From assembly GCA_002269645.1 (NCBI GenBank), contig NIVC01003782.1, positions 1-64,000 of the forward strand: DNA of 64,000 bases. Reading direction: 5' to 3'. Shown here in pieces: positions 9,076 through 34,899 of the stretch. A program made the translations under genes and the position numbers. Within the stretch, counting starts at the first letter, position 1. Each line of letters begins with the position of its first letter. The stretch comes from Macrostomum lignano (taxonomy: Eukaryota). The notes under the pieces are model-generated. The model ran no database searches, was not told the DNA's origin, and worked only from the letters and a program-made list of their open reading frames with translations.

Positions 9076-9249
9076 AACATACAAGCCCCTATTGAAGGTG
9101 CACTAGTAAAAATATTACATATAAAGTATTGCAATAGATCAAATAGTAGAAACTGGTGTTTTCGCTTGTGCTGATTTTAACTTTAGCTCGTATTATCCGT
9201 TTCTACCCAAGGGGATAGACATGCATTATAAGAGAAGGACTCCAAATGG

Positions 9250-9600: not shown

Positions 9601-9668
9601 ACTAAGTAAGTAATATAAAATTTATAAGATAAAAATCAGTCCAAGCCGAAAATTTCCCCAATCGTCAG

Positions 9669-12152: not shown

Positions 12153-12340
12153 GGGGTACAGCCCCTAGAGTTGGTTGCTGTTGTCAAAGTCGTTGCGCCA
12201 AAACCACTTGCATAGCAACGTGAAGTTCGGAGAGTTTGTGAAAGCAGATAGGAAGTTATGGGGGGGGCTTGACTTTACTCCCCTAAACAGTCGAATCTCT
12301 ATAATAAACCACCTCTCTATGTTTAATCATTAACTAACAG

Positions 12341-12671
12341 AGTCCTTCTCGTAGTCGGCTGCGTCATATTCCTATGCGGCATTGTGGCAGCTGTAATAGC
12401 AATCATGGTCTGCTGCTTCGGCATGCAGCTCTGCTTTGATTGTGCCAACAGGCCGCGCGGGCATGGCGGCGGCGGAGGTCTTGGGTTGTTTTCTTGCTGC
12501 AAAGGCGGTGGCTACGGAGGCGGTGTCTACGGAGGCGGTGGCTACGGAGGTTACAGAGGCGGCGGCGCTTACGCTGGAGGTTACGGAGGTAGCCCCGCAC
12601 CCAACTACCCAGCGCCTATGGCCTACGCTCCGCGCCCGTTTCAAGCCCCAATGGGCAATTATCCTGCCTAA
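12341..12671 (+). CDS. Small single-pass Cys-rich membrane protein with a Gly/Tyr/Pro-rich tail, paralog 3 of 3 (terminal exon; candidate first exon 11648-11682, MAETCSSTDTR)
   Basis: Branch point plus acceptor taactaacag|A at 12341, then VLLVVGCVIFLCGIVAAVIAIMVCCFGMQLC...GGGYGGG...PNYPAPMAY. The candidate first exon aaaATGGCC...AGAAA|gtgact ends in the required phase 2. Confidence 0.7.
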
Positions 12672-13139
12672 GACCTGATTGCCTAAAAACCCATCGAACT
12701 TTGACTGTGACCGAAAATTTTTGTACTTTTTAATGTTTCTGTTTTCAAATCGACAGCCGAAATGGCAAAAATTTTTTTGGTTTCCTAATAAGTCTCCAGT
12801 AAACAAATTGATATCAATGATGATATAAACCAAACGGAATATACTGTTATTTCTTTGACTAAACAAGTGTATCGCAATCGCAAGGCTAGAATTGAAAATA
12901 AGTTATAATTAAGACCAAATAAGATTATTTCAAATTTGCAAAAATGTTACTCCAGAGACAAGCAGTAAAACAAGAGATAAATTTGTATTTAAGATACTTT
13001 AAATCAACTGCAGTTTCAAGTTTCACTTAGCGCAGAAAAGTACACACTGTCCTGTTGAAACGCGTATTAGCCAAATTGAATAAGAAATGAGGGATTTAAA
13101 ATAGTGCTAATTCACTTGGATGTTTGTGGAGCTGAGAAT

Positions 13140-13585
13140 GTGGAGGGCCGGGAAGTGCGGTGGCTGCGGAACTGAGGGGTGTGGAGGGCCGGGGAGTGAG
13201 GTGGCTGCGGAACTGAGGGGTGTGGAGGGTCGGGGAGTGAGGTGGCTGCAGAACTGAGGGGTGTGGAGGGTCGGGGAGTGAGGTGGCTGCGGAACTGAGG
13301 GGTGTGGAGGGTCGGGGAGTGAGGTGGCTGCAGAACTGAGGGGTGTGGAGGGTCGGGGAGTGAGGTGGCTGCGGAACTGAGGGGTGTGGAGGGCCGGGGA
13401 GTGAGGTGGCTGCAGAACTGAGGGGTGTGGAGGGCCGGGGAGTGAGGTGGCTGCAGAACTGATGAGTGTGAAGGGTCGGGTAGTGAAATGGCTGCAAAAA
13501 TGAGGGGTGTGGAGGGTCGGGGAGTGAGGTGGGTGCGGAACTGAGGGGTGTGGAGGGTCGGGGAGTGAGGTGGGTGCGGAACTGA
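13140..13585. repeat. 41-bp minisatellite, ~11 copies
   Basis: Unit ggggagtgaggtggctgcagaactgaggggtgtggagggtc. Confidence 0.95.
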
Positions 13586-13633
13586 TTCGGCGTAGCCATG
13601 GAATTCTTTGTTACACTCGTAGAGACAGCTTTT

Positions 13634-14831
13634 TTACTGAGAGTCTAACGGAAGAATCCGAGGATTTTCAGTCCAAAACTTATCCTTAATAATGTCGATA
13701 TGCAGCAGAGTGGAAGCCGACTCCGCCTCAGCCTTGGCCACTTTGGCGGCAATCTCGCTTACTTCTTCCACACTTGCCTCGCCTACATCCGGGACATTGT
13801 CACCCACTGAGGCTTCCTCAGCGACGGCATCAACTTGTGAGTCGAGCAGGCTGGCTCGAACCAGCAGGCTGCCTTTACGATAGACTTCCGGCTCGTTATT
13901 GTAGTTGATGCCGAATTGGGAGAACAACAATTCGTTCTTGTCGGCTGCTAAAGTGCCTTTCAGGCGTTCCTGCGCCTGGTTGGCGCTCAAGCCGCCTCGA
14001 AGCACCAGCGACCAAAAGGCTGTGTTGTACAGATTGTTGATGTGGCAGTCGGCCTGGGAATGTACAGCATTCTCAGTCTCAGCAGATGACCAATCAGATC
14101 CTCACAGCCCGTGTCAAATACTGACCAATCAGAGCCTCACAACAGCCCATGTCAACTACTGACCAATCAGAGCCTCACAACAGCCCATGTCAACTACTGA
14201 CCAATCAGAGCCTCACAACAGCCCATGTCAGCTACTGACCAATCAGAGCCTCACAACAGCCCGTGTCAAATACTGACCAATCAGAGCCTCACAACAGCCC
14301 ATGTCAGCTACTGACCAATCAGAAGCTCTTAGCCCATATCATATACTGACCAACCAGAGCTCCCTACTCATAGCACAGGCAGCTTACCTGCCTCCAAGAC
14401 AGATAGTCCCGCAAAGTTCTCACAGACGGATAAGCCACAGCGCGGGCATCAAAAGCTGGCGGATACAGCAGCCTCCTATCGGGGAAGCAAATCGACCAAT
14501 TAAACACAAAAGCCGACGTGAACAATGAGCCAATTAGAGAAGCCAGCTTGCTGGCTCTCCTATTAAATGCATTCGTGTCTTTGTGCAGGACAAAGCTGTA
14601 CTCGTCGCTCTGACCGTACGCTAGCAGGATGCTGCGATGCTCCATTAGGACTCGCCTGGCTGCCAGCGTCATCAAACGAATACAGCGGGGCTCGTTGGGC
14701 TTAGCAAACTCGTGACGCTCTGAGAATTTGTGAAATCCTCGGCCATCCACTCGGACAACCAGCCAGCATTGCGGCAGCAGCTGGTCGCTCTGCTCGAACT
14801 TGCGCACGTATTCAAATTTGCTTTTGGCCAT
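13634..14831 (-). CDS. THG1L: tRNA(His) guanylyltransferase Thg1, 2 exons (14831-14388, 14053-13634), ~287 aa
   Basis: [13 protein letters not shown]...[13 protein letters not shown]...YGQSDEYSF...FDAR...YLSWRQ|[10 protein letters not shown]...[12 protein letters not shown]...RKG are Thg1 hallmark motifs. Canonical gtaag/cag phase-0 intron. Confidence 0.96.
14088..14360. repeat. 38-bp minisatellite inside the THG1 intron
   Basis: About 7 copies of gaccaatcagagcctcacaacagcccatgtcaactact. Confidence 0.92.
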
Positions 14832-14945
14832 AAAAGTAAAACAAATTATTATGGATTGATTTTTGTGCATAAAGTCAATAAAGTCAAGATTGAGACGCAA
14901 CGATAATCTATCAAAATACAATATTAAAACCCAAAAGCAAAAAAT

Positions 14946-15860
14946 CAGCCAATCAGAGACAACCGGAATTACCCACACCAACTCTTGGCCAATCAGAGAC
15001 AACTGGAATTACCCACACCGACTCTTGGCCAATCAGAGACAACTGGAACTACCCACATCAACTCTCGGCCAATCAGAGACAACTGGAATTACCCACACCG
15101 ACTCTTGGCCAATTAGAGACAACTGGAATTACCCACACCGACTCTTGGCCAATCAGAGACAACTGGAATTACCCACACCGACTCTTGGCCAATCAGAGAC
15201 AACTGAAACTGCCCACACCAACTCTTGGCCAATCAGAGGCAACTGGAATTACCCACACCGACTCTTGGCCAATCAGAGACAACTGAAACTGCCCACACCA
15301 ACTCTTGGCCAATCAGAGGCAACTGGAATTACCCACACCGACTCTTGGCCAATCAGAGACAACGGGAACTGCCCACACCGACTCTTGGCCAATCAGAGAC
15401 AACTGGAATTACCCACACCGACTCTTGGCCAATCAGAGACAACTGGAACTACCCACACCGACTCTTGGCCAATCAGAGACAACTGGAATTACCCACACCG
15501 ACTCTTGGCCAATCAGAGACAACTGGAACTACCCACACCAACTCTTGGCCAATCAGAGACAACTGGAACTACCCACACCAACTCATGGCCAATCAGAGAC
15601 AACTGGAACTACCCACACCGACTCTTGGCCAATCAGAGACAACTGGAACTACCCACACCAACTCTTGGCCAATCAGAGACAACTGGAACTACCCACACCA
15701 ACTCATGGCCAATCAGAGACAACTGGAACTACCCACACCGACTCTTGGCCAATCAGAGACAACTGGAACTACCCACACCAACTCATGGCCAATCAGAGAC
15801 AACTGGAACTACCCACACCGACTCTTGGCCAATCAGAGACAACTGGAACTACCCACACTA
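14946..15860. repeat. 40-bp minisatellite, ~23 copies, directly upstream of the THG1 start
   Basis: Unit ccaatcagagacaactggaa(c/t)tacccacacc(g/a)actcttgg. Confidence 0.97.
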
Positions 15861-16710
15861 AACACTGACCAATTATATAGAACAAATAAACTTCAATTCT
15901 AATAAAATATTAAAGCAAACACTTGAAAAAGTGTGTCTCAAAATTAGGCAATCAACGGTCAAGTTTTAAATAAATCATATTTTATTTCAATATCAATGTA
16001 TTTGTATATCAAAAGTATGCATGCAAAACCAGAGTACACCAAAACCTGCTTCCATATTAAAGGGAAGTAAACCCTGGGTGCCACTGCATTAAACCAAAAG
16101 AGACAAAATCAATCTAAAATCAACAAAGTTCATTGATGATAAAGCTTCAATATGTGAGTATCAATGTTAAACACAAATGGAACTTAAATTATGGAAAAAA
16201 ATTCCGACACAATAAAATACTGAATACAGTACTTATAATACGCATATTGCGATTGACGAGTTTTTCAAGAATCTAGGTAAGAAAATGAGGAATGGAGGAT
16301 AAATATAGACATAAATAAAATACGATAAATTATATATCTTTTAGCACACTAGACACCTTATTTTCGGTCGGAAGGACTGCCTCTACAGTTATGTCTTTCG
16401 ATACATATCGATTGAAAACAGATAAATTGAAAAGAAATATTCAATACATATCGGCAGCACTATAGGTCCCACTAATTCAAGAATGCATTTCAATGCATAT
16501 CGGTATCACTCGGCGTCAGTAAGTTTATTAATGTACATTTCGATACATATCGGTAGCACTCGATCTCTATGGTTGATTACTGCATTTAAAAAAACACGGC
16601 AATTTATGTACTGAAATAGATTTCGATACATATCGGCTGTAGAACAACATATGTAATTTCTTTAACAAAGAAAATTTCGATACATATCGGCAAAGGTATT
16701 AAAATTACAG

Positions 16711-18991
16711 CTATGCTTCCTGCGTATCAGCTACTGATGTCAATCGAACATCGCCTTGACTGACAACTGCAGCCTCAGTTGCATCATCCTCTGGTTCTTC
16801 TGTTGGTAGGCCGGCAGAAATTAGAAGCGGAGCCAATACGGTTCGAATCTCGGCTAATGAGGGCCGCCTGTCAGGATCTGGGTTACCCATAGAGAGAATC
16901 AGCTGCTGTAGCTCTGAAGGGTAGCTGATAGGAGTTTGAGAAGATTGTCATTAGTTATAAGATTGAGCGTAAAATTAAATTTAAAGTGCGAACACTCACT
17001 CGAATTCTGGACTAGTTGGTAGTTTAATCCCCGAGCAAGTGGCTAAAGCGACGCTATCGCCGCGACTATACACCGGATCAAATGGCGACTCGTTGTAGCA
17101 CAGGGCGTAAAGAACGCAGCCAAGGCTCTATAATAAAAGTACATGGTATTAGCATGTTGCAATGCAAAGGATATTTTTGCCTTTAAACAATATAAAGTCT
17201 TGTTCACTTTCTACAATACTAAGCATCGGTGGTTCAGTGGTAGAATGCTCGCCTGCCACGCGGGCGGCCCGGGTTCGATTCCCGGCCGATGCAACATTTT
17301 TTACCAATCTTGGATTCACACTAAACAAGCGCAAAACGTATTTTAATTTAGTAAGAATTTTTTAAAGATTTCGAAAAAATGAAAAAATAACATATAAGTA
17401 TTAAACATTCAGAGTATAGTTTGCTAGCCGATATGTTGCGAAAATAATTTGATTTCATTTATTTCAGCGGATTGGATAGTCCTATATACTAGCTAGACAG
17501 ATACGGAAATCTCTATTTAATTACTAATTTTAAAGTAGATACATCGCTAAGTTTTACTAAATTACTACCAACACTGAAAAAAACTATTTAAACTCATTCC
17601 ATTTTAAAGTTGTTACAAAAAAACAGGGTAAGGATAGCGAAATTAAAAACGACAAAATATTCGTATATTTCTACTTTCAGTAGTTCAAATAGCCATCTCA
17701 CCCAAATATCGGCTTTCTCGCTGATAATGCCAGGACACGGCACGTTGTACAGCTCAGGCGCCCGATATGTCATCGAGCAGTGCTCGGCGGCGAAATCCTG
17801 CCAACGTACAGCCTCCTGACGACTATTAATCCACACCAGTTTATCCGTGACGCTACCAAAATCCATCAGGATTGGTCGTAATGAGTCGTCTAAGAGTACA
17901 TTGCCAGTTTTCAGGTCCCGATGCGCCAAATCGGCCGAGTGCATTGCGGCCAAACCAGAGCAGAGACCGCTAATTGTTGATAGGATTCTATTCAAACCAA
18001 TTGACGATTTGGCAATACGGCAGAGGTCCAATTCTTCGGATAAAGTGCCACGTCGATGGTAGGGAAGCACCAAAATTACCTCGGCAACCACTGTTGCCGC
18101 CACTGAGGTTATTGGCTGGCCGACTGAGTGGCCCAGACAGGTGAGCAGGTTCGGGTGCCGCAGCCTGCGGTGGTACTCAGCCTCTCGAACAGCCCGCTCC
18201 GAGTCCGCGCGGGAGTGACAGAGAATTCGTTTCGCCACGCACAGCCGGTTGGATTTCTCTTCACGGCACAAATCCACCTGGCTGAAGCCGCTGCACAAAT
18301 CGCATTTTGGAGACGCTGCGTTATTTTCTTATTGGCGAATGCTACTTTCGATACATATCGGGTCATGGACTTATCGATTTTTTAATAGACAAACACTACT
18401 TTCGATACATATCGGGTCATGGACTAATCGATTTTTTAATAGACAAACACTACTTTCGATACATATCGGGTCATGGACTAATCGATTTTTTAATAGACAA
18501 ACACTACTTTCGATACAAATTGGGTCTTGGACTTATCTAATTTTGAATAGGCAAACATTACTTTCGATACATATCGGGGCATGAACATACTTTCGATACA
18601 TTCTTGCATATCAGGCCATACCTTAACTGACATAAATACACGAATAAAAGCACGAAACGTCCTGTTTTCAGCTGGACTCTGAATAGAGCTTTGTGGCGCC
18701 TTTAAATACTGCATTAACTAGCAAAGTTTAAATTTATATCTATAAATTGTATGTTTGTGTAGCATGTTACGAATACTACTTTCGATACATATCGGATCGT
18801 GTCTATTCATGCACTTAACCAATATCGTATCAGTTTAATTCCCAATTTCAACTATTACAGACAGGCAAACGAATTAAGCTGCAGGAGTTTATTAAAAATT
18901 AAAACACGACTCACCCTTCGCCAATATTTTCAACAATTCGATACGATCTCCCATCCACAACGAAAGTTGGGCCCGACTGAATGCAGCCCAT
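16711..18991 (-). CDS. STK16: Serine/threonine kinase 16 (NAK family), 4 exons (18991-18915, 18290-17702, 17127-17000, 16924-16711), 335 aa
   Basis: MGCIQSGPTFVVDGRSYRIVENIGEG|GFSQVDL...VAKRILCH...HRDLKTGNVLL...DFGS...YRAPE...ADIW|SLGCVLYALC...RGDSVALA...DPDRRP. All three introns are GT-AG with matching phases. The N-terminal MGC motif fits STK16 myristoylation and palmitoylation. Confidence 0.93.
17223..17293 (+). tRNA. tRNA-Gly(GCC)
   Basis: GCATCGGTGGTTCAGTGGTAGAATGCTCGCCTGCCACGCGGGCGGCCCGGGTTCGATTCCCGGCCGATGCA forms a full cloverleaf. Anticodon GCC at 17255-17257, T6 Pol III terminator at 17297-17302. Confidence 0.98.
18343..18600. repeat. 54-bp minisatellite in STK16 intron 1, ~4.5 copies
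   Basis: Unit tactttcgatacatatcgggtcatggactaatcgattttttaatagacaaacac. Confidence 0.9.
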
Positions 18992-19572
18992 TTGATTTAA
19001 ATAAAACTTGATCACAAGTTTCTATTATACTACTGTTTTTGATTCTGAAAGTAGTGCGAAGTTATTATTATCAACTAGATGTATGTAAATATCGATTAAT
19101 AATTATAATAAGATACTCTTAACAAAAAACCATACTACTAAAAGTAGCTGGCATAAATTTGCATAACAACGAAATCAAAATAAAAAACTTATAACAAGCT
19201 TTAATGATTCAATTATATCATCTACATGGGATGATTAATTAGTTGAATTAACTAACGATAGAAGTGTTTATTTATTAATAAATTTATCGATTTTCTTGCA
19301 GAAAGTTTGAGCCCCAGGCGCTACGGAGAACTGTTATTGCTTGCTTTAATAATTTTAAGCAAACAGATGATGGGCAATGAAGGTGTTGCAACAAGTGGCC
19401 CATGGACGCGTGTTTTTAGCTATACTAGAAGATACACTGAAGGAGAGAGTGAAGCTTTTTTCTAATCAATACAAACGAAAACTCGATGCCCTACTAATAG
19501 TAGTTAAGCTACGTCTTAAATTTAAAGTGTTCCAATTTTCATCAGTTTCCAAAGTCAGCCTATAGTTTTCAA

Positions 19573-19812
19573 TTACTCGGCATCCTCGCCTTCGGTGCGG
19601 TAATTCTTGCAGATTTGCAGGAAAGCGCACAGCGGCAGAAACCAGACCAGGTAGAGGCTGACGCCCATGCCGACTTTGGTGCCAACGGAGACCCGGTTGC
19701 GCGGCGGCGTGGCCCAGTAGAAGTTGGAGTTGGCGCGGACAGCCGGCATTGATGCCTGATGGCCAAGCCGGGTGCCGGCGCGTAGCAAAGCGAGAGAAGT
19801 GCGGCTCAGCAT
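19573..19812 (-). CDS. COX8: Probable cytochrome c oxidase subunit VIII (79 aa)
   Basis: Arg-rich, acid-free mitochondrial presequence MLSRTSLALLRAGTRLG..., then TPPRNRVSVGTKVGMG, one TM helix with an FLP motif, and ending KNYR. This is the COX8 layout (PP..R.S..EK...TM..P.W.L..YK/R). Confidence 0.7.
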   Translation of the reverse strand: MLSRTSLALLRAGTRLGHQASMPAVRANSNFYWATPPRNRVSVGTKVGMGVSLYLVWFLPLCAFLQICKNYRTEGEDAE

Positions 19813-20119
19813 GACTGCTCGGGTGGCGGTTAGAGAGGATTGCGCATGCAATAGACAGCAGGACAAAGTGTTTTACGATACATATCGGCTTTATGAGTTC
19901 AACAATGCATTAATTAATATTAGCTCTCTAACTTCCTTAGACACCTTTGATTTTCTCAGGCATTTTATCACACTATATCCGAACCTGTCTTAAATTAATT
20001 CGGACACGCACAGATTCGAACCCGGGCACTTTGGCACCAAGGACTACTGAAGTAGAAAGACGGGACGCCACGTTTCTAGGAAAACTTTAGGAGACAGGTT
20101 TTACCGAAAAGCACATATT

Positions 20120-20577
20120 AGTTCTCCCTCTTTTCCCGTCTTTGCTCTCCCTTCTTCCCCTGCTCTCCTCTCTCTCATATTCTCCCCCTCTCTTCTCTCT
20201 TGTCTCTCCGCTTTTCTCCCTTCTTTCTCCTCTCCTCTCCCCTCTCTCCCCTTCTCTCTCCTCCTCTCTTCCCTCTTTCCCCTTCTCTTCCTTCTCTCTC
20301 CTCTTCTCTTCCGTCCCTCCCCTTCTCCTCCGTCCCTCCCCTTCTCTTCCCTCTCTCCCCTTCTCTTCCTTTCTCTCTCCTCTTCTCTTCCCTCTCTCCC
20401 CTTCTCTTCCCTCTCTCCCCTTCTCTTCCCTCTCTCCCCTTCTCTTCCCTCTCTCCCATTCTCTTCCCTCTCTCCCCTTCTCTTCCCTCTCTCCCCTTCT
20501 CTTCCCTCTCTCCCCTTCTCTTCCCTCTCTCCCCTTCTCTTCCCTCTCTCCCCTTCTCTCTCCTCTTCTCTCCCCTC
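20120..20577. repeat. Polypyrimidine/polypurine low-complexity repeat (ctcttccctctctccccttct-type)
   Basis: Almost purely C/T on the + strand. The ORFs here are artefacts. Confidence 0.95.
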
Positions 20578-21184
20578 GACGACCCCAGTTATAGCTCTGT
20601 TGATATACATAAAGCCTTTCGTTTAGAAAACTAGGATTCTATATACGTTAATATTATATCATATGTACATGTCACATTCATAAAGCCAATGAGTTCAGCT
20701 GTGCCATTTGTATGATTTACTGCACTTTTTACTAATAATTGAAATAAAAATATGCAATCAAAATTTCGCATGCCAAGTTTTAAGTAGCTGAAAATTCAAA
20801 CTGGCACCTCGTTAAAGATTGCTGCATTTACTGTTAGCTCCGACTGTTCTGTCCGGAAAGCAACTTAAAAGAATCTTAAAAATAAACAGTTGCCGAACTG
20901 AGAACGGAGCACTAGCCTACTTTAAGTAGGGATATAAGTAGGTAGAAATGCTATAGGAAAATTAAAAAAGTAAATTGAACAAACTCTATCAAAAAGTGCA
21001 ACCAATTCATAAACTATTTATTTTTCATTAAATAATTTATACAAACATGATGGTAGAATGAACAAAAGCAATGCAATTCAAGCACAAAAAGTTAATCTGA
21101 TGACCAATTAAAGGAAGACAAATGCAATAACATTGAAGTTGGCTTAACTGTTTTTTAAATAGTGCATTGAAATAGTAAGGAGGG

Positions 21185-21480
21185 CCAGTCTAGCAATCCA
21201 CTGAATGATATCAAAGGGAAGGGTCTAGCAATCCGCTGAATGATATAAAAGGGAAGGGTCTAGCAATTCACTGAATGATATCAAAGGGAAGGGTCTAGCA
21301 ATCCACTGAATGATACCATGGACGGGTCTAGCAATCCACTGAATGATATCAAAGGGAAGGGTCTAGCAATGCACTGAAGGATTACAGAAGGGTTTAGCAA
21401 TCCACTGAATGATACCATGGACGGGTCTAGCAATCCATAGAATAATATCAAGGAAGGTTTACCCAATCCACTGAAGGACA
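21185..21480. repeat. ~35-bp imperfect minisatellite
   Basis: About 8 copies of gggtctagcaatccactgaatgatatcaaagggaa. Confidence 0.88.
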
Positions 21481-21537
21481 CTAGCATCAGGCAGGAAGGA
21501 CCCCACAGGCATTTACACAGAGAACTAAATGAAGATT

Positions 21538-24500
21538 TCACTCGTCGCTAACTTCACCCTCTTCAGTCTCAGAGTTGCCTCCACGGCGGCCACCGCCGGC
21601 ATCTTCGCCGCTGCCATCTTCAGCTTGCGGAGTTGGACGTTCCGACGTGCCCAGAGCTTCAACGAACTGATTCGGCAGCTCCTCCTCGTTGCCTCCACCG
21701 CCATCAGCGTCAATATCTCCCAAAGGCGGCTCGGCAATTTCCATGCTTTCAGTATCTTGACTGTCGCAATCAATACCGTCGTTGCCATCCTGCGAGAGCT
21801 GTCGATGCCGCTGACGCCCATGCCGACTTCGCTGCTGCTCCTGCTGTTGGTGCGGCGGCGGTGTCGGCGCCGGCGAGAACCGCCTGTAGGAGGAATTCCG
21901 AGAGCCGAAACCTGACGGCCCGTTCAAGTTGTCAAATTCCTCCTCGTCTGCGTCCTGAAGCTGGCCAACATCCGGCTGACGGGACCGTCGACGCGAATTC
22001 AAAGACAGATGCGACTGCGACTGCGGCGGTGGCGTCCTCGAATGCCGCGATCGTCGACGCCATCGAGACGAGGACGAAGTCGACGACGACTGCGGAGAAG
22101 GCAACTGCTGACGCTGACGATCCTCGCGGCCGCGGCGGCGATGCTGCTGCTGCTGATGCTCCTGACGATCCTGACGACGTCGGGATGGCGAACGCTGCCC
22201 GCCAGGACGCCGGGGCGGAGGCGTCGGTCGGCGAGGCGGCGACAAATGGCGCCGACGCTCAGCATGTAGGCGCGATCGGCGACCGTCGGGGGACTCAGAG
22301 GACGACGCGTCCTCTCGATTGCGACTGCGGCGATGCCGACTGTGCCGACTGCCGCTTCGGCCGAGATCGTCTCGACGGTGCGGAGGCGAAGATCGACGTC
22401 GATGCGACGGCGAGCGGGAGCGGGACCGACGCCGGGCGGTTGACAGGGCGGCGCCGCGCGGGGATCGAGACCGGGACCTACGCCGATGGCCGCGATCAAC
22501 TCCCTCAGACTCTCGGCGTCGAGATCGGGAACGAGGCTGCTGGCGTTGTTGCTGCTGATGATGACGGCTGGACGACGGTGCCGCAGCAGACTTGTCCTCG
22601 CCTGCGGCCAAGTCGCTACCATTGTCGTCAATTATCCGCTTACGCCGGCGCTCTGTCTCGCTTTCAATTTCGCGCAGTCGGGCTTCAATCTGAGCCTTCT
22701 GTCGTTGCTTCTCCGACTCTTTGGCTGCTGCTGCTGATTTCTTCTTTTTGCTTTTCGATTGCTTCAACTGCTGCTCAGATTGTTGCTGTTGCTGCTGCTG
22801 TTGGGGATCGTCTGCTTCAATATCGGACAGGTCGGACGTATGCACCGAGGACACGGTCACGTCCGATACGTCATTACTGTCAAGTTGAACTCCTTTCCAA
22901 GCAAAGTTATAGTCGGATGAGGCGGCGGCGGCAGCGGCGGAGGAGGCTGGCGCATCCGCTAAGCCTGACGGATCTTCTCCTGGAGGCGTTGGCGGAGTGG
23001 TTGGAAGTCTATCTGTCGTTTCCATCGGTTCTGCTTGGTCATCAAGTGCCAGACTGAGCATCTCGCCCTCAGGAGTCTTTGGAGTCTGATGAAGCGGCTG
23101 AGACGGCTGAGTTCGCTGCTCTTCTGACTCAGACTCGGGCGGAGGAGGGGGAGGAGGCGGCGGAGGTGGCGGCGCCTCATCTTCGTGCTCAGGCGGCGGT
23201 GGAGGCGGCGGCGGAGGTGGCGGCGGGGGCGGAGGAGGAGGCGGCGGCGGGGCGGTGGCGGCGGTATGACGAGGCCGGAGGAGCCAAACGCTGACGGAGG
23301 CATTGGCGGAGGCGGGAACGGGAAGGGGAACATCGGGATTGGGAAAGTTGGCGGCGGAAGCGAAGTTGGCGGCAGTGGGGGCGGCGGGGGCGGCACCGGC
23401 TGCTGCTGCTGTTGCTGTTGCTCATTCGGAGTTGGCAGTAGCGGCAGCTGACGCCGCATCTGTCGAAGCTCCTCAGGGGTGACTCCTGCGTAGTCAGCGA
23501 TAGCCCGGTCCACCCGGGGCTGGATGCTGGTCTGCACAGCGTTGTGGCTGAGCAGCTGGTCAAGGAGGTCGTCCAGCATGGACTGCACAGCCGGGGTGTC
23601 CAACAGGCGGCGCCGGAGTCGCTCCCGGGTGGCCACCTGATGTGGAGACGATTGGGATGGGGAATTGCGTTGGGATTAGGAATTGAGTTGGGATTGGAAT
23701 TGAGTTGGGATTAGGAATTGAGTTGGGATTAGGAATTGAGTTGGGAATTGGGAATTGAGTTGGGAATTGGGAATTGAGTTGGGATTGGAATTGAGTTGGG
23801 ATTAGGAATTGAGTTGGGATTGGAATTGAGTTGGGATTAGGAATTGAGTTGGGATTAGGAATTGAGTTGGGAATTGGGAATTGAGTTGGGAATTGGGAAT
23901 TGAGTTGGGATTGGAATTGAGTTGGGATTAGGAATTGAGTTGGGATTAGGAATTGAGTTGGGATTAGGAATTGAGTTGGGATTAGGAATTGAGTTGGGAA
24001 TTGGGAATTGTCCGAATTGAGTTGGGAATGGGAATTGAGTTGGGAATGGGAATTGTCCGAATTGGGAATGGAAATTGAGTTGGGAATGGGAATTGAGTTG
24101 GGATTGAGAATTGAGTTGGAATTGGGAATTGAGTTGGGAATTGGGAATTGAGTTAGGAATTGGGAATTGAGTTGGGAATTGGGAATTGAGTTGGGAATTG
24201 GGAATTGAGTTGGGAATTGGGAATTGAGTTGGGGATAGGGAATTGAGCTTGGAATTGGGGAGTTGGGAATTGGGAATTGAGTTGGGAATTGGGAATTGAG
24301 TTGGGGATTGGGAATTGAGTTGAGGGAGCAAAACTCACTTTATTCAAGCCGGGCTCCCAGACCACCCTATCTAAGTGCTTCTTAGTCAGAGGCTTCAACT
24401 GGTTAATCAATCGAGAGTAACCAGATCGGGACTCCAGCTTAGCTGCGCAGTCGCGTCTGAGCTCATCAAACAGGCCGCTGGACTTGACAGACTGAATGAT

Positions 24501-24572
24501 TTCTTTAGCTAGCCGCCTGTTAGCACTGCTGCTGCTGTGACTGCCATATCCACTGCTGTCTGCGCTTGGCAT
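21538..24572 (-). CDS. BOD1: BOD1/BOD1L (COMPASS Shg1 domain) family protein with poly-Pro and Arg/Ser-rich C-terminus; exons 24572-24339 and 23636-21538, with one apparent frameshift at ~23250
   Basis: LAKEIIQSVKSSGLFDELRRDC...HLDRVVWEPGLNK|VATRERLRRRLL...QPRVDRAIADY matches the Bod1/Shg1 domain. Phase-0 gtgag...cag intron. Adding one G to the GGGG at 23249-23252 joins the 22959-23636 and 21538-23061 frames. Confidence 0.8.
23655..24325. repeat. Short-period satellite (ggaattgagttgggatta / ggaattgg variants) filling BOD1 intron 1
   Basis: About 670 bp of GGAATTGAGTTG-based units. Confidence 0.95.
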
Positions 24573-24749
24573 TTCAGTGCTTTGTTAAGTTCAATTAATT
24601 AATGATACACTCTGGGAATGTGTTTTTGCGTGTTTGATTTGATTATACCTGCGAAGGATCAATAAGGGACAAGATGTCTGGGCTTTGTTCAAAATGCTAA
24701 ATATGCCAAATATTATTCTTAATCTAAGTGCTCAAACATTCAAGTTTTA

Positions 24750-27700
24750 TTTACTGGCTATTAACTTTACGATTATAGAACCAGCATAAATAAGTAAGAT
24801 TTAGACATCGACCTGACCTAACCTAAAGGACTAGAGACACATAATACACATTTATTTTATGCTAGGATGGCAAGAGAATTACTAGCAATAATGTTTAGGT
24901 GCCAATATGTACAATTGTTTTATGTGGCCTATGTGTTTGTGATAATAGTAATATATTTGCTATTCATTAGCACATAGGGCATAGCCCAGTGGTTTAGCAT
25001 GGCACTCTTATGTGCTACAAGCCTATGCCGAATTCCAAGTGTAGTAATATTAATTTGGGACTTCATTTATCAATGCCCTTAAAGGCCAAACCCCCCAAGG
25101 CACAGTGAAGCATAAATACTTAAATAAAGTTAGGGCTACTATACACTTGTGAATTTGCCTATGCATATGATTGCATACATATTATTGCATTTTGTGTAGA
25201 CCTGCTCAGGGAAGATTTTGAAATTTATAGTATGGTCTATAGCTCCCAATATAAAGTCAAAAGATGCCTCTAGGAAGTAGAATAGGATAAGCAGATATGA
25301 CAGCCTATATAACTTACTCTGCATATGAATCAAGGATCCAAAAATATGAATCTGCATTGTTTAAAAGGGCTTTGACATTAATATCTATGGCATAAGAGTA
25401 GCCAATAGCATTTTTCCTTTAAAACTATATAAAGAAAATCTGTATATCCATTAATTATATCCCTAACAACTGAGCCTGAATTCCAAGTTCTAGCAGTTAT
25501 TTTATCATTTGTTTATTTATTTGAAAATAACTTTATTCTTTAAGGCCAATTGCCAAGCTACAAGAGCAAGATTTTCATTTTCTCAGTTGAGCTTCAACAG
25601 TTTAAAACTATTAAGTTATAACAAGTTATACTAGTACATTTATCCCATTTAGCCAGGACATACAATCTTGTCATTGATATGATGAGTTTATTATTCATGC
25701 ATTGTCATTCTTGCTGAGTTGCATAGAAGTCATATGGAACCATTTATGATAAAGGATGGGTCCATAGATGACTATGGATAATATATGCATAGTATAATGC
25801 TTGCTCTATTCATGATAATGCCATTATAATGCATCTTAAAAGATGTATTCTAGCTTTAAATTTGACAAGATCTGGCAGTGTTTAAAGATACCAAAACCAA
25901 CCAGCAAAAGAAGATGAGCAACAAAGATCAAAAATAATACAACTGATGCTACTATTACTATATTATACCTAAGGTCTATAGCCATGCAGATTATTGTATA
26001 TAATTAACTTATTTTTAGTGGCTGATAGTATTTTGCAACCAACCAATGAAAACTTAAAATCTGCCTTGTTTTTACTCTTAAGCACAAGTGTCAATTCCCA
26101 TTTTAAAAGCTATTTTTCAACTACACTTGTAACTACTCTATTCAGAATATATTCAGAAAATGATTACAACAAAGTTGAAAGCATCTCCTTTCAGAAACCA
26201 TCAATGAGCAAAAGTAGCTATATGCTACTCCTATGTTGCAAGAGTGCAATAAAGATTCAATCAGTTTTTTTAACAATATCAGCTTGGAAGATATAGAGAA
26301 CACTTGTAACCCAGCTTCAGAGTGTAACTGACAATAGTGTTCAAGCTACCTTAATATATCAATGGGCTATCACTTTTGGCATTTCTAAAGCTACTCTCAA
26401 CTGCCTTTTAAAGCTGCTTATAACCTTCTTTCTAGTATTAAAATAATTTTATCCTGCTTGAAAACTATATGCTCTGTGAACAATAGTGGTATATATTAGA
26501 GGTTCATTTTTGTAAAATAAGCAAGGACAAGTGTAATATTCATCTTGAAAAAGACAAAGAACTGCTAACATCAATTGATGACTCACCAATTGTAGGCAAC
26601 ACTAGAGAAGCACCTTGAAACTATAAAGCAGTTATGAATATAAGCTATATGATAGCAGTTAAAGCTAAGTATAAGAAAATATATTCATTTGTATTTGCTC
26701 CTTTTTGCCAATATGACCATTTATTTTTATTTAGTTCTAATGCTGCAAATAGAAAATTGAGCTTGGTTTTGATACTCCAAAAAAAAACAAATAGAAAGAA
26801 CATTGCTTATACACAAAGAAAAAATGTACTAATAAGTGGCAGGAAAAGCACAATGAATTGCTTTGCAGAATGATGCATTTGATATATAAAAAGGAAGGTA
26901 TAAAAAAGCTTTGCAATTTACCTTCTGACTATTGATATTGTGGTTGTGACTTAGAGGGTATATTCTAAATGTCTAACAATCTAGCACTGCTATAGCCTTC
27001 CATATTGTTGAGAGATAGAATATAAATTTTTAGACCAATTATTTGTTTGTTATAGTTTTTTGTTTTTAAAGACTCTTTAACACCTTACAGTCTAATCTTG
27101 AATCTTGAATAATAGTCTATTATTTATACTTTATTGGCTAAAAAAATAAGAAAAATAGTTGACCTATTTTGTATATTATATTAGCTATTGCTACTAAATA
27201 GTATTATTTGTTCTTTTTATTTTAAATTGGTTGCCACTTGCTTAATACTTTTAATATTTTTATGAAAAAAAAACTTTTTTTTCTGCAAAATACTACATGC
27301 CCCAACCCCAGAATTTTTGGTCTCTTTTTTTAACCATTTTCAATGCATCATTTTTCTGGTCATTGTCCTATCTGTGTCCTAGTTTTGGTTTTCTATTTTC
27401 CCACCTATGGTCCATTGTTTCCCCATTTTTGGTCACTTAATTTCTCAAACTTTATTTCTACACAAATTTTGCTCCTGTCCAACATTCTGCCTATCCCTTG
27501 CCTTATGCGCCCATCCAAGCCCTGTCCCATGCGTTGGAGTTTTGTTTTGTCAATATTTATATGTTGCCTCTAATGCTGCCATCTTTAAATTAAAGGCTTG
27601 CCCCTCTCTTGCTCTTTCTCTCACTTTCACTGTTCTGTCTCAATCTATTTTTTGATTTCTTTGCTCCTTGTGTTCTAATTACCATAGCAACCACTTACTT

Positions 27701-28170
27701 TATTCAATCTTAAAGCACTGCGGTACCAGCTGGCTCTATCTATCAATTGTAGTCGGAATATTTATTGTCTGCTAAACAATTACTTGCTCATCTGGTCATC
27801 TAGTTAATAATAAAAAACATCAATAACATTTATTCCTTATTAATTAGTTAGCTCTAAATAGTTTATCCTGAGTCATTTGCCTGTGGGACATAAAACAACC
27901 CTAAAGTTCTTAGCTTTGGGAATTTAATATTCTATAATACATAAATTACTGTGGTGGCAGCTCTACCCTATTTTTAGCAATCAGTTCAAAAAATTGATGC
28001 ATTAAATTATGGTGTCAGAAGCTCCAGTGTATAACATTTTGAACAACCATGCTGCTTAACAACTGCTTGACCACAAATATCCTCCCCCAGAATTGAGGAC
28101 CCAGCACTTAGAATAAAATCAGAGAAAATTTTGTTGCAATTGTTTGCATAATTTTGTAATTTGTGCCCTT
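24750..28170 (-). mobile_element. Heavily degenerate, CpG-erased non-LTR retrotransposon remnant
   Basis: The 27870-28155 end aligns with the 5' region of the LINE-like element at 34335-34640. Weak residual APE/RT-like peptides on the minus strand (e.g. LLIDGF near 26200, LYIGSYRPYYKF near 25240). Many stop codons. Confidence 0.5.
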
Positions 28171-30357
28171 AGCAAAGTACATATATGTTGACTACTATTT
28201 GATATTTAAAGTAAAATTTGACCAGCTCATAGTTTTAATTTATAAACTACTATCAACTTTGCCATTGCTATTTTTCTTAAATGTTGCCTGTTTATATTTA
28301 TCTGTTTATCTAATAAATATATACCTGTTTATCTGTTTATATTTAGTATATTATTTCTATTCCTATTGCTATGCCTAGTACACCAATGGCCAATGACCCA
28401 AGACTATTCCAGGTGATGCCATTACCACTTATTCTAGCTTTGCTAGATCTAATAATGAGCTACTCAATGCCCTAGAGCCCCTAGCCAATGAAGATCTACT
28501 AACTCTGGCTAATAGCCTTAACTAGCTTAGACTTCTTTAACAAGGTAAGAGCTACTTCAATGGCCCTAAAACCCAAGGTGATATAGCTGCTAGAGTCAGA
28601 TTGGTATCTCATGCCTCCAATGCCACTATCAGCTTAGACAAGTGGATCTAGCCAAGAGTCTCAGGATGCTCAAAGACCTAGCAAGCATGCACCAGCCTCT
28701 TAGCTAGCTGTCACAATATCCTAACAACTTATAGAACTCTTGCTAAAGGAGCTTAGAGATTTGAGGAACACTGACTAAGTGAACAATGGCAAACACTAGA
28801 GGTGCCTTGCCAACCAATATGGCCTATTGGCTGCTATGTAGGCAATTGACATTGTTGCTAAAGTTCTTGGCAACTGCATTTAGATTAGCAATAGATGAAG
28901 ACCACACTGTAGCTTGTAGATAGGCCCTGCCACTAATATTAGAATAGCTATTCCAATATGCTTGCATGGCCAACTTAGTCCTAGCCTTTAGCTACCTAGG
29001 ACTATTAGCCTAAGATGCAGTGGCCAAAGATCAATAAGGTGCCTACCTAGCCAGATGCTAAAGATGCATTTGGCTAAAATTAAAGAAGACCTGGCCCCTA
29101 AAGAGTGAGCCTAAAAGGCTATTTTTTCTAAATATGATTTTTTCATGCAATTGCCCTATGCATGTAGCAGTGGGGCTACCACTATTTGATATCATTCTCT
29201 CTTATTTGGATTTTTTTCTTATGTTTGGTCCAGTCTAACTATCCTAAGGTGTACCCCATGATGTGGATTTTGTTATCCTCCTTTTCCCAGTTTCGGTCTT
29301 TGTATTGGTGCTTTTTTGCTCTCTTTTGGTCTTTTTGCCATTTCCATTTTTGTTTTTTAACTTTTTTCTTTTGCTTCTTTGTCATTTTCTAGCCAAACCC
29401 TATGCTAATCTCTTGATTTTTTTACCTATCTACATGTCCATTGCCTGGCCCCATTTGTTAAATACCAAAATTTTTGTTACTATTTAACTTATCTACCTTT
29501 GCTTATCTATGTTTAACTTTCTAGCTAATATAAGAATTACCAAACAATGGCAAACATTGGTTTTATTCCTTGTTATGTGCTCTTATTCTTTTCTTACCTT
29601 TGTTCTTGAGTATTTATATATTTACTACTAACTTTAGTGCTGGAGTCCTAGACTCTGAAAGGTTACATGTATACTAGAAAATTCTGATATACAAATGACC
29701 CCTTCCAAAGCTAGCATACAAATTTTGGTATACAAATTCATGCAATTTTTTGGTATACAAGTATTGGTGAATAAATTCATGCTATGTATGAGTATTAGGG
29801 CCTGTAATGTAAATTAACATAATATAATATAACATAATATAAGGGAAAATTAGATAGTCTAGAAAGTCAATGAAAAACATTTTGCTTCTTTAAAATTAGC
29901 AATAAATAAAATTAGTATAAATTATTGCTAAGAACATAAATTTTACATCATTATTTTTATAAGCAAAATTTAAGTTTGTTTAAAATAAAAAATTGTAATA
30001 TTTTAAAATATTTTTTGTACAAAAGCCTTTTTTTAGGAAACTTTATTTATGAAAACTAAATGACATTTTTAGGAATTTTTGGTATACATTTTAAGGAATT
30101 TTTTAGTTTTTGGCACACACTGGCATACATTCAGCTACTATAAGATTCTTGTTCTAGTGTATATTAGACCTATTATATAATCCAGACCCTGGCTTGAGTT
30201 TTCTTCAAATTAGCCTCTTTCTACCATGGTAACTGCAAATTATCTTGCATAACAGCTTGGCCAAACTGATTATATATCTTTTCCAATAATAAATAGTAGC
30301 AATTTATATATTACTTTTTGAGCAATAAGTCTATAGCTTTAGCCTCTATCTTAAATA

Positions 30358-31531
30358 TTTGGTTGTCAAGAAAGTTCCTGGCTATTCTCAAAAATTTTAC
30401 AGCGTGGTTTAAGTTTAATGGAAAGTTCTAGAAACCTGGGGCATGTGGGTATATAGGGGGTGTGAGTATGCATATTTTCTAGCTTTTCACTTATCTAGCA
30501 ACTATTAACATGGCAGCAAATAAGTCACTGCAAAAATCTTCTATTTGCATTTGCTTATTGTATGACTTTAAATTTGGCCTGAGCGGCTCCAAATCCAGTC
30601 ACCGTATCAATGCTGCATTTGGCAAAGGTACCGTGTCTGTGTCAATAGCCAATGACTGGTTTCAATGATTCCGCACTGGCGACGAATCCATTGAAGATCA
30701 GCCACGATTGGGTAGGCCTTCCGAAGTTGATAACAAAGAAATTGGCTCTATGGTGGAAGCTGACCCACATCTGACAACACATGAAATAGTGGCTAACCTT
30801 TGGTGTTTCATACAACCCTATTTAACAAACTGCATGCCATTGGCAAGGTTTCAAAACTCAACAAGTGGGTGCCCCACCACCTCAGCAACTTTGACCATCA
30901 GTGGCAGGCGGAGGCGGCAACTTTTATTGCTCTTGTTCCGGTGTACCACAGCTTGGCTAGAGTCAATTGTGACTAGAGATAAAAAATGGGTGCTTTATGT
31001 CAACAAGAAGTGCCAACAATCTTGGGTCTCTAAGAATCAACCACCGCAGCAGCATCCAAAACCAGAGTTGCACCCACAAAAGGTCATGCTGTCTATATGG
31101 TAGGACAGCAAAGGTATCCTGTACTATGAGCTGCTTCTTTGCAACACCACTGTCACAGCCAAGGTCTACTGCCAACAACTGCAGAAGGTGGCTGAGAAAA
31201 TTAATAAACTATGTCCAGGGCACGGCAAAGTTTGTTTCCTTCACGACAACACCTGACCACATACGGCTAAGATGATCTACCAGAAATTGCTACAACTAGG
31301 GTGGGAGATTCTCCCATACCCACCATATTCTCCCACACCAATAGCTTAAAAACTTCTTCAAATTGAAGCCAGCTAGTCTCTATAGTGATGGTATCAAAAG
31401 TCTACCAGAAAAATGGCAGAAGGTCATTGACTCAGATGAGGACTATTTTGATATTTGATGCAATTCAGCATCTAAAAAACTTGGGCTGATGGAACATTCT
31501 AGAATTGCCAGGAACTTTCTTGACAACCAAA
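30358..31531 (+). mobile_element. Mariner (Tc1/mariner DD34D) transposon, defective
   Basis: 25-bp TIRs tttggttgtcaagaaagttcctggc (30358-30382) and its reverse complement (31507-31531), with TA on the left. Transposase remnants GRPSEVD, IVTRDKKWVLYVN (from GDEKW), HPQKVMLSIW, HDNT*PH and PYPPYSP, with stops, frameshifts and an internal deletion. Confidence 0.92.
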
Positions 31532-31859
31532 CTTTATTTGCGAGATAAACAATAACAGATTCTCAAATCTAAGCAAGCTCTAAAATTAAGAATCTAATAT
31601 TCTATAATAGGCCCTATATTAGTAATTACTATTAAGCAAATAATAGGAAGTATATAGGCCCAGCTTACTTCAAATAATTATACTTACCTTAGCTAGCTAC
31701 CAGGCTTAGTAAAGAACTTAAAATGTTATAATGTGTAGCGGTTCGGGGCGGGGCGGTGCATGTTTTAGCGAGACCCCGCCTATTAAAATGCCTATTTAAA
31801 AACTAAAAGTAAAACACCGAAATTGAACATTCTAGCTAAAAAAACCTTAAAACAAATAT

Positions 31860-32910
31860 ATATATAACTAAAAAACCTATCACAATTGTTGGTGATGCCA
31901 TAGATACAATATAAATATACCAAAAAACTGTACAAGTAAATGAATTTAAATACCTGGGAATTATTTTTGAACCAAAAAACAGCTTTAAAAATGTATTGAA
32001 CACCAAACTAAGCAGGGATATACAGCCATGTTTTCCCTACTCCATAGGGTAAAGAATACGTCCCTAGACATCACACTCATTCGCAGACTATTTGACGCAC
32101 TTGTTACCCCCGTTATCACTTGCGGTTGTGAGCTCTGGGGCCCTCTGGCTACCATGTCTGATACAAAAGCTATTGATAATATTCAGCTGAAATTCTACAA
32201 ATATCTCCTCAATCTACCAAAATTTGCTAGCAACAGTGTGGTATCATCAGAACTTGAGCTTACTCCAATCTCTCAACGAATCGCTAAAACCTACCTCATC
32301 TACTGGCTGAAGATTAGACACAAAAAACTCTGCCAAACGACTCTAGAAATTTTCTACTCAAACACCGGCCAAAAAAATCCATGGAAAATGAATGTACTAA
32401 AGAAACTAGAAAGTATAGACCTAAAAGCACTAACTGAAGATAAACTTTCCCAAAGCTTTAATAACGAGAAATACCTAGTGAAAAAGCACCTCAAGATACA
32501 CAGAGAAAGAGAACTTAGCCAAAAGCTAGAGAATCAGCAACATATTAAACTCTACAAAAACGCCTATCTCTACAAAAAAATCTGCAGGCCCGACCTTTCA
32601 GATTTCTTTCCATGTACATTTAGAAACAAAAAATTCTTAACAACCCTCCTAAAACTGAAATGCGAGATTACACCCAACTTTTTTTCTCAAGAACCATGTA
32701 AAATGTGTGGAGCGCGAAATGGTTCTGACATTCTACACTACTTGACCGAATGTCCACAAACTGAAGAGATCAGGAAAAAATACTTCTGTCAATACCTCTT
32801 AAATAGCAATCAAATACACAAGATAGGATATGCTACAAATGAAAAAAGAGTCAGAAAAGAGCTCACTGGTGTAGCTAAAATATATGAAGTCATGAATAGC
32901 TAAAACAGTT
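31860..32910 (+). mobile_element. 5'-truncated LINE ORF2 3' end (post-RT region with C-terminal Cys/His motif)
   Basis: FKYLGIIF upstream. ORF 32028-32903 contains LFDALVTPVITCGCELWG, IQLKFYKYLLNL and CKMCGARNGSDILHYLTECP. Confidence 0.85.
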
Positions 32911-33399
32911 AAACAAACTGAATCAGATACATCAGCAGTGTAACAAATCCGCTTTTCAGTTGTTTATTCATTTACTGTCTTTTTTAATTTCCTATATTTA
33001 AATCGTCGTTATTCGTTAAACGTAAAATTCTTTCGAAGTATTGTTTATGTTCGTTTTTCACGCTTTGAAATATCACGCGCTTTCAAAAATACTACATCTT
33101 TTTTTTTTTTACAAACTCGCTTACCAAAGTAATCTCGCAATTAAAGCTATACCTCGTAATTTGTACTCATTTTTGTATTAATATTTATACTCGTTGTTAG
33201 TTGTTAGTCGTCACTTTTCGTCTAAAAATACCGTAAAAATTCTGGCGCGCTTTCAAATACTTTATCTTTTACAATAACTCAGCAAATCGTCGTCAAATCG
33301 TCTTTATAAACTTCTATATTCGAAAATTCCAAATACATAGCTCTATAATATATTGGCCAAACAGGCTAATTGCCTGAGCCAAATTCTCTTACTACTACT

Positions 33400-34690
33400 A
33401 CTACTATGTTCATTTCCTTTAAATTTTTCCACAAAAATTACTTTAGTGTACTTCGGCAGGAACCATTGTAAGTACGAAGCTAAAAAACTGAGATCTGGAA
33501 GAAAACATTATCAATCTAGAAGCCTACAAGACGCCAAGGCTCCATCTGTTCCCTACTCGAACTTACAGACTCACAAGTCCCCCCTGCTCAGTACACTCAG
33601 CTGCAGAAAGTACTTTAGTGTACTTCGGCAGGAACCATTGTGAGTACGAAGCTGAAAACTGAGATCTGGAAGGAAACATTATCAATCTAGAAGCCTACAA
33701 GACGCCAAGGCTCCATCTGTTCCCTACTCGAACTTACAGACTCCTAAGTCCCGGCGGGCTCAGTAAATTGAACTTTTTTCATTTTTAAATTTTGCACGCG
33801 AGTGTCGAAATTTGTGCGTTTTCCGTTACCTGGAGTGAGGTCACTCCCGGCGTTGGCTTTTGCTTGCTCCCCCTCTTCATGCACTTGCTTACCAGACGCG
33901 GGACGTGAGCTGTAAATTTTGTTTTCCCATTGTGAATTTAATGCCGCCCCCGCGTTATGCCCTTTTTCGTGTTTCTGCCTCCATGATCATGCCCCGCCGG
34001 TGTTCCAATGAGTGACCGGTAATTTTTCCTCTTGTAAATAGGTGCGATGCCACGAGACTTTTCTGCATGCCTCCTCCTCCCTCCTTCTGCTTCTCCCTTT
34101 CTCGTTTTGTTGCTCATTTACTTGTTTAGCTCAATTTTCTTGTTTAATTAGCCTTCGCGCACCGGCACCCGCGATCAGTATCGTCGTAAAACATTAACCG
34201 CAATCTTCTGTAATTGTTTTAATTAGTGACAGCATCAGAAATTTTATTATCCAGTCTGCTAAATAACAACTAAACCTAATAAACCTTAATTTGCTAATAT
34301 TTATTCGTTTAAACCAAAGCCATGGTATTTCTTGAGGATCACGCCCGGGGGCGTAAAATAACCTGAAGTTCTCAGCTCAAAGAAAGCTCCGAGACTTATT
34401 CGTTCCGTAATACGTAAATTATGGTGGTGGCAGCAACTACCCACCCACTGAAAGTAATAAGCTCAGCAAATTAACGCATTATTTTATCGGCGCCAAAAGC
34501 TCTGGTGTCTACCATTTGAACGACCGTGCCGCTAACGACCGCTCCGCTACGATTACGACTACCCTCCCCCCGGACTTGAGAACCCGGCAGTCGGAGTAAA
34601 ACAGGAGAAAGATTTCGTTGTGATTCGTCTGCGCGATTTTCCGGTTTTATACGTGCGAACACAACTCCGGCGGCAATTCAAAACGTGGAA
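33400..34690 (-). mobile_element. 5' part of a LINE-like element (GC-rich 5' region, possible APE start near 33790)
   Basis: Homologous to 27870-28155. Minus-strand PGLRS and EPW...VPAE peptides loosely resemble an APE endonuclease N-terminus. Confidence 0.45.
33439..33752. repeat. 172-bp tandem duplication within a LINE remnant
   Basis: tactttagtgtacttcggcaggaaccattg...cgaacttacagactc at 33439 and again at 33611. Confidence 0.9.
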
Positions 34691-34899
34691 TCCGCCATAC
34701 CTCACTGGTGTCAGCAATTAAATTCAAACAGACCAATTTTCCAAGAAACTTTCTCCACCCCCACCTCATAAGTTTAAAAAATATTTTTTTTGTGATTATA
34801 ATAAATTTTACGCGTGTGATTTTTATTCTAAATACTAAAATATGCTAAGAGTAGGTTTATACAGAGCATTAATTCTGTAGCTTCACTATTAAAGCTTAT

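Follow-up and report, generated by a model that had tools for sequence, protein, structure and literature searches.

A CpG-free intergenic island in Macrostomum lignano and the probable role of germ-line methylation in its origin

In the flatworm Macrostomum lignano, an intergenic block of about 6 kb has been stripped of nearly all its CpG dinucleotides, and those that survive are still disappearing from duplicated copies of the locus, about 15 times faster than other cytosines change. The block lies in contig NIVC01003782.1 of assembly GCA_002269645.1, positions 1–64000 of which were analysed; this 64-kb stretch is called the window below. The contig stretch that encodes PAA49810.1 (L003) is 100% identical to window 6711–29018 and has the same coordinates. 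We think it quite probable that the block is an island of CpG methylation in the germ line, flanked by genes that would be unmethylated, and that its depletion is the long-term result of deamination of methylated cytosines. The evidence consists of the extent of the depletion, the fate of CpG in old repeats that the island shares with other parts of the window, and the changes that have occurred since the locus was duplicated.

CpG depletion of the island and of the repeats within it

The core of the island (25030–30357; GC 32%) contains 5 CpG where its C and G content predicts 136.4, an observed/expected ratio (o/e) of 0.04, and a deficit with a Poisson probability of ~5e-40 when calculated at o/e 0.8. 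Over the remainder of the window CpG o/e is 0.85, and the lowest value for any non-overlapping 5.3-kb window is 0.44. An earlier note on this DNA had counted about five CpG in 25030–30400, and none in 25030–27500. The exact count is indeed five, at 27508, 27532, 27721, 27754 and 29294, with zero in 25030–27507, and no CpG-free gap elsewhere in the 64 kb is as long as the three that fall inside 25030–30400 (2479, 1540 and 1109 bp); the next longest is 345 bp. The note had observed, too, that an equally AT-rich flank (32950–33350) is rich in CpG, and so it is: 32904–33431, with GC of only 30%, has a CpG o/e of 2.11 and is not depleted. Within the island GpC is not depleted (o/e 1.76), and TpA is not in excess (0.96).

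The island is old, non-coding, intergenic DNA with at least two repeat fossils in it; it is not a recognisable transposon. Six-frame Pfam scans of 24900–30420 return no family at E<=1, and the longest run without a stop codon (104 codons) falls within what shuffled sequence yields (mean 92, 95th percentile 121), so there is no coding signal. An Rfam scan finds no family within 25030–30357. Searches for direct or inverted repeats at the ends of the block return chance-level short matches only. The earlier note's description of the block as a transposable-element domain is thus not supported. Origin as a nuclear copy of mitochondrial DNA was considered as well and dropped: there is no consistent strand skew, and the fossils inside the block are of nuclear repeats.

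The first of these fossils, repeat ‘X’, had been noticed before, as a resemblance between 27870–28155 and 34335–34640. The homology is real: BLASTN aligns 27935–28155 with 34408–34640 at 70% identity (E 6e-17), and a transition-tolerant local alignment extends the match to 27885–28162 and 34348–34647, both on the forward strand; part of the repeat is present a third time, on the minus strand, at 46059–46118. The relative at 34348–34647 has 24 CpG and the fossil has kept none of them. Nine have become CA, six TG and four TA, and the rest fall in gaps, much as the note had described, whereas identity at non-CpG sites is 80%. The second fossil, repeat ‘Z’ (25089–25214, forward strand), is also old, and its match to 1232–1365 is weak (BLASTN E 0.008). 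It has kept none of the seven CpG of its relative, and is 84% identical to it at non-CpG sites.

Repeat pairs that lie outside the island behave differently. Twelve of 15 CpG are kept between 975–1143 and 45254–45088, and three of seven between 34539–34596 and 46118–46059, at non-CpG identities of 75–86%. Taken together, 0/31 CpG are kept in the island fossils vs 15/22 in the outside pairs (Fisher P 2.7e-8). The third copy of X also tells us which member of the X pair has changed. At three sites it has CG in common with 34539–34596 where the island has TG, CA or TA, so the state in the island is the derived one. Both strands are affected, C>T and G>A occurring in similar numbers, and C>T and G>A changes at non-CpG sites are just mildly more frequent than the reverse changes. 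The claim that change here was CpG-specific, struck both strands, and took place on the island side is therefore upheld by these three polarised sites and, as described next, by the spectrum of changes among three copies of the locus.

Loss of CpG among three copies of the locus

The copy in the window was compared with two others. One, L002 (NIVC01003854.1), spans window positions 7850–29169. The other, L004 (NIVC01000221.1), was reached by exact-sequence look-up with the derived spliced products of two annotated genes, and spans the whole island and further; another stretch of the same contig, L001, overlaps it, L001 211–5582 being identical with L004 10001–15372. All three copies are collinear and have the same flanking genes. 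In the 3606 columns within 25030–29169 at which window, L002 and L004 can be aligned, the copies diverge by 3.0–4.0% and are roughly equidistant, with 63, 46 and 80 private changes. Divergence of 3–4% fits the recent whole-genome duplication of M. lignano. The copies differ by an indel, too: 25924–26460 is present in the window and in L004, and absent from L002. The island is CpG-free in L002 and L004 as well as in the window, so the depletion is older than the split between the copies.

What has happened since that split can be read by assigning each private difference to a single branch, ancestry being decided by majority rule over the three near-equidistant copies. Five ancestral CpG can be identified in 25030–29169, and these have suffered seven losses on 15 CpG-branches. 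Counted by site, transitions have occurred at 7/30 CpG site-branches vs 59/3636 for all other C and G (odds ratio 18, P 6.5e-7); four are C>T and three are G>A. Two CpG, 27532 and 29148, were each lost independently in two of the copies, once to TG and once to CA. Tabulated by dinucleotide context, C>T per site-branch in the island amounts to 23% at CG, compared with 1.8% at CA, 1.6% at CT and 1.2% at CC. New CpG are also scarce: only two survive in the island, vs ~10 expected from its 472 ancestral TG and CA sites at the observed rate of T>C and A>G change (P 0.003).

The flank at 7850–24339 serves as a control. It is duplicated just as the island is, and with its tandem arrays masked it displays no significant excess of change at CpG (24/3018 vs 54/8760 for other C and G; P 0.30). 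Island CpG differ from flank CpG with an odds ratio of 38 (P 9e-9). CpG in the island change ~29 times as fast as CpG in the flank, and ~14 times as fast as island cytosines outside CpG undergo C>T.

A younger piece of DNA shows the same CpG-specific excess. L004 carries a 764-bp insertion at window position 29169, with a CpG o/e of 0.99; the site is empty in the window, and the 11 bp by which the two sides overlap (29159–29169) are likely a target-site duplication. L002 departs from the window at the same position, and its last ~340 bp, to the end of the stretch that was fetched, align to this insertion. Where L002 and L004 can both be read, the CpG-site columns of the insertion differ between them in 10/42 cases vs 9/298 for the other columns (P 1.2e-5), and nine of the ten differences are CG in one copy vs TG or CA in the other. 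L004 has two further insertions. Insertions limited to some of the copies show that the island is old and stable, and that young DNA goes on arriving in it.

A pairwise comparison of the window with L002, in which three of nine CpG sites differ, does not by itself prove ongoing hypermutation, because most CpG in a CpG-poor region are recent gains. The argument for continuing loss is made, instead, only from the three-way polarisation and the young insertion. These show that CpG-specific hypermutation has continued since duplication, that it is confined to the island, and that it also affects DNA that landed there recently.

The limits of the island and its neighbours

On its left the island abuts a gene with a BOD1/SHG1 domain (Pfam COMPASS-Shg1, E 6e-7), whose first coding exon occupies 24340–24572 on the minus strand with the ATG at 24572. 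Eight of the nine CpG in 24350–24563 are identical in all three copies, and this exon, with its stable CpG, appears to mark the unmethylated side of the boundary. Somewhat more broadly, 11 CpG in 24350–24652 are CG in all three copies, that at 24446 excepted. The next three in the window (24770, 24809 and 25029) are CT or CA in both of the other copies, and every window CpG from 24770 onward is private or variable. The switch from shared to private CpG therefore takes place within ~120 bp, some 80–200 bp upstream of the start codon of the BOD1-like gene. CpG o/e is 0.30 in 24573–25029, and 24653–25029, which begins ~80 bp upstream of the start codon and includes those three CpG, can be regarded as a transition zone. 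The earlier note had placed the left edge at 25030. That the edge is sharp stands; its position is nearer 24653–24770, given that CpG as far as 24652 are conserved in the three copies.

The right edge had been put at ~30400. There is a sharp change at this point, too, although what begins there is not the far side of the island but a young transposon, a Mos1-type mariner (30358–31531, forward strand), and CpG-poor DNA resumes beyond it at 31532. This continuation runs to ~31723 and has a single CpG, at 31541, which is TG in L004. If the young mariner is not counted, the island measures ~6 kb and extends in the window from ~24.7 to 31.7 kb.

The mariner has terminal inverted repeats of 31 nt, 30 of which match, and its product resembles Pfam Transposase_1 (9e-26) and HTH_48 (9e-11), and PDB entry 3hos (7e-37). 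Its transposase frame is broken by three in-frame stops within the part that can be aligned to Mos1, and seemingly by at least two frameshifts as well. The element is found in the window copy and not in L004, where the empty site is clean. A TA dinucleotide adjoins the element on its left but not on its right. At the empty site of L004, ...AAATA is followed across the junction by CTTTATTT..., with no second TA. Mariner CpG o/e is 0.30, with TpG and CpA at ~1.4. As no other copy of the locus shares this insertion, its composition must have come with the source copy. Mos1 is too distant for a test of decay at the arginine codons of the mariner.

Beyond 31723 the copies part company. The block at 31724–34768 (forward strand) is not shared with L004, where 747 bp of different sequence stand in its place; of the other copies fetched, L004 alone extends to this point. 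The block comprises an intact 291-codon open reading frame (32028–32903), directly upstream of the AT-rich, high-CpG stretch 32904–33431, and then the CpG-rich copy of X at 34348–34647. The reading frame matches no Pfam family, and has no homologue among 5.8 billion proteins. In the AT-rich stretch, almost all CpG are in the context TCG or ACG. The CpG-rich copy of X had been described as a related element that escaped the process. Because its block is missing from L004, the simplest reading is that this copy is young, and it is probably a recent arrival, rather than an escapee.

Among the neighbouring genes, the BOD1-like gene corresponds to PAA49812.1 (BOX15_Mlig004892g2), its spliced product of 303 aa having been identified by exact look-up. 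Exact-protein look-ups of three open reading frames of the window gave no match. Almost the whole of the BOD1-like intron at 23637–24339 is an 18-bp tandem array (TTGGGATTGGGAATTGAG, ~37 copies), and the length of this intron varies by copy, from 702 bp in the window to 500 bp in L001. In NIVC01000221.1 a retrotransposon of ~4.4 kb without long terminal repeats (Exo_endo_phos, RVT_1, RNase_H) lies inside the BOD1-like gene and has been annotated in frame with it as a protein of 1623 aa, PAA87688.1 (L001 211–5582); the window copy lacks this insertion. Farther to the left are an STK16-like kinase, one exon of which is 99% identical to M. lignano PAA87686.1, and THG1, an exon of which finds matches of ~60% identity. 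Trematodes and cestodes are the best named animals among these, in a word-indexed search that returned no M. lignano protein; annotated Thg1 genes are present in all three contigs, so the search was at fault in its sensitivity. A tRNA-Gly (GCC) gene at 17223–17293, between the THG1 and kinase genes, is the sole result of the Rfam and tRNA scans.

Some other regions of the window deserve brief mention. In 7850–12000, CpG transitions number 8/414 vs 5/1896 for other C and G among the three copies, and CpG o/e is 0.6–0.7; hypermutation may thus have a second, weaker site here. The last 5.7 kb (58264–64000) is satellite DNA with a 24/48-bp unit that continues past the end of the window, and the single CpG position of this unit is C>T in 16% of the units. 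Arrays of a 23-bp unit occupy 51619–54087 (~108 copies) and 56177–57876 (~75 copies), the CpG of the unit being well conserved (o/e 1.3–1.7), and a run of telomere-type (CTAACC)n precedes each of them, at 50708–50766 and 55320–55353. CpG transitions are raised in some of the tandem arrays and not in others, the copies within an array not being independent of one another.

Explanations and known parallels

How might such an island come about? Methylation of its CpG in the germ line, followed by deamination, is to our minds the best explanation and probably the correct one, because the loss is CpG-specific, strand-symmetric and persistent, because the flanks are spared, and because the species has the necessary enzymes. 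We infer that 5-methylcytosine (5mC) would be the agent of loss, acting in germ cells. The DNMT1/DNMT3 system that M. lignano retains would densely methylate CpG in the island; 5mC would deaminate spontaneously to thymine, converting CpG to TpG or CpA according to the strand; and loss at ~14 times the rate of other island cytosines would drive the sequence, in its AT-biased background, toward an equilibrium close to CpG-free. That state was reached before the copies separated, and loss continues in each copy and in newly inserted DNA. It is plausible that the old repeat fossils were the trigger that recruited methylation.

The earlier note had considered methylation notable in a flatworm. Parasitic flatworms and Schmidtea have indeed lost DNMT1 and DNMT3. 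M. lignano is reported to be among the few flatworms that still have both, and to have low-level 5mC (PMC11292947, PMC9246332, PMC10658182). Methylation here is thus not paradoxical: the process is of a known kind, in an under-described lineage.

Several observations weigh against this explanation, or limit how far it can be pressed. The polarised counts are few: the island contributes five ancestral CpG, and the insertion 21. Transitions at C and G outside CpG are themselves more frequent in the island, at 1.6% vs 0.62% for the flank, a difference of ~2.6 times. This excess is spread evenly over CA, CT and CC, transitions at A and T and transversions being similar to those of the flank, and pure CpG methylation does not account for it. 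The rise in the products expected of CpG decay is modest, TpG standing at 1.26 and CpA at 1.06 in the island, with TpG+CpA at 1.06 in the window as a whole. The block at 31724–34768 adjoins the island without visible CpG decay, and so must be either very young or outside the methylated zone; copy-specific blocks after 31723 prevent the right limit of the island from being fixed. Majority-rule ancestry, lastly, presumes a star tree. The insertion common to L002 and L004 may mean that these two are sisters, in which case the three window-private CpG of the left shoulder are unpolarised.

The rival that survives best, although we judge it unlikely, is that methylation is real but of the ordinary gene-body type. 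The island would then belong to a transcript that has escaped annotation, as a long 5' intron, a region of upstream exons or a long non-coding RNA, and would not be a silenced block of intergenic or repeat-derived DNA. The island does abut the 5' end of the BOD1-like gene, and methylation of gene bodies is the commonest invertebrate pattern (PMC11292947). Yet the genes to hand do not conform to it. The BOD1-like, STK16-like and THG1 genes, all of housekeeping type, display no excess of change at CpG and have normal CpG o/e, so germ-line methylation would not extend to them. In none of the three annotated contigs does the island contain a called gene. Methylated gene bodies of invertebrates are, besides, usually far less depleted than an o/e of 0.04.

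It is also rather improbable, we believe, that the hypermutation is CpG-specific and yet independent of 5mC, whether caused by a CpG-preferring deaminase, or by some chromatin state in which G:T mismatches locally go unrepaired. The DNA records only the outcome of mutation, and the modest rise of non-CpG C>T in the island might be thought to favor such a process. We know of no CpG-specific process of this sort in animals, however, and the strand symmetry of the losses and their restriction to CpG (23% vs 1.2–1.8% in other contexts) match deamination of 5mC, for which the species has the DNMT1/DNMT3 machinery (PMC11292947).

A genome defence that mutates duplicated DNA, akin to the repeat-induced point mutation (RIP) of fungi and raised in the earlier note, is contradicted by the data. 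The locus does exist in at least three copies, and C>T occurs on both strands, but the flanks, whose copies are just as similar, are spared, depletion was complete before the copies diverged, and the preference for CpA and the excess of TpA that betray RIP are missing. A foreign or artefactual origin of the block, whether by contamination, chimeric joining, horizontal acquisition from a CpG-poor genome, or a fault of sequencing or base-calling, is scarcely credible, abrupt as the change in composition is, since the block is collinear in three separately assembled contigs that are 3–4% diverged and have insertions of their own, holds fossils of repeats present elsewhere in the window, and differs between copies by real substitutions with a coherent spectrum. 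Miscalling of 5mC in nanopore reads can be set aside in particular, the three contigs being in agreement; the assembly is, we presume, PacBio-based.

If germ-line methylation is indeed responsible, the locus would offer a readout, from sequence and over evolutionary time, of where methylation falls in the germ line of M. lignano, and it would point to a narrow intergenic island, not to housekeeping genes. The signal is still active, and is conserved across duplicated subgenomes. Should the finding prove general, M. lignano would join a small group of animals in which repeats, and not gene bodies, are the target of methylation; CpG deserts, together with polarised comparison of subgenome copies, would furnish a simple computational map of methylated islands; and this transgenic, regenerative species would be a tractable model for how such islands are targeted and bounded.

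How does the island compare with systems already known? It resembles vertebrate CpG decay, and the mosaic methylation of invertebrates with its bimodal CpG o/e, in the conversion of CpG to TpG and CpA on both strands while regions taken to be unmethylated keep their CpG, and in losing CpG some ten times faster than other transitions occur. Unlike bulk vertebrate DNA, in which CpG o/e is ~0.2, it has reached the more extreme value of 0.04, and unlike either system it is confined to ~6 kb, with an edge resolved to ~120 bp, and is intergenic rather than in gene bodies. With fungal RIP it shares a duplicated genome in which C>T transitions, striking either strand, have left a sharply limited, AT-rich block. 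It parts from RIP in being CpG-specific, with neither a CpA bias nor an excess of TpA, in the sparing of duplicated flanks, and in the tempo of its loss, which is gradual and continuing, instead of coming in a burst.

In its targeting the island resembles methylation aimed at transposons and repeats without methylation of gene bodies, which has been described in a chaetognath, Paraspadella gotoi, and has been reported in ctenophores and early-branching nematodes as well (PMC12460157). The M. lignano case differs from these in being known from the pattern of mutation, at one locus; in lacking a recognisable intact transposon or coding domain within the island; and in the undecayed state of the young CpG-rich block at its edge. 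It is alike in that the island, non-genic and repeat-bearing, behaves as if methylated while expressed neighbour genes do not, and in that mobile DNA newly inserted in the island is affected, too. One could go further and imagine, tentatively and with more doubt than conviction, that M. lignano gave up gene-body methylation and retargeted DNMT1 and DNMT3 to small, sharply bounded, heritable intergenic islands on old repeat fossils, and that these persisted when the whole genome was duplicated and methylate any DNA that lands in them. Like those three lineages, M. lignano uses trans-splicing; and so, if retargeting did take place, it would be the fourth animal lineage with this pattern and, once again, one that trans-splices.

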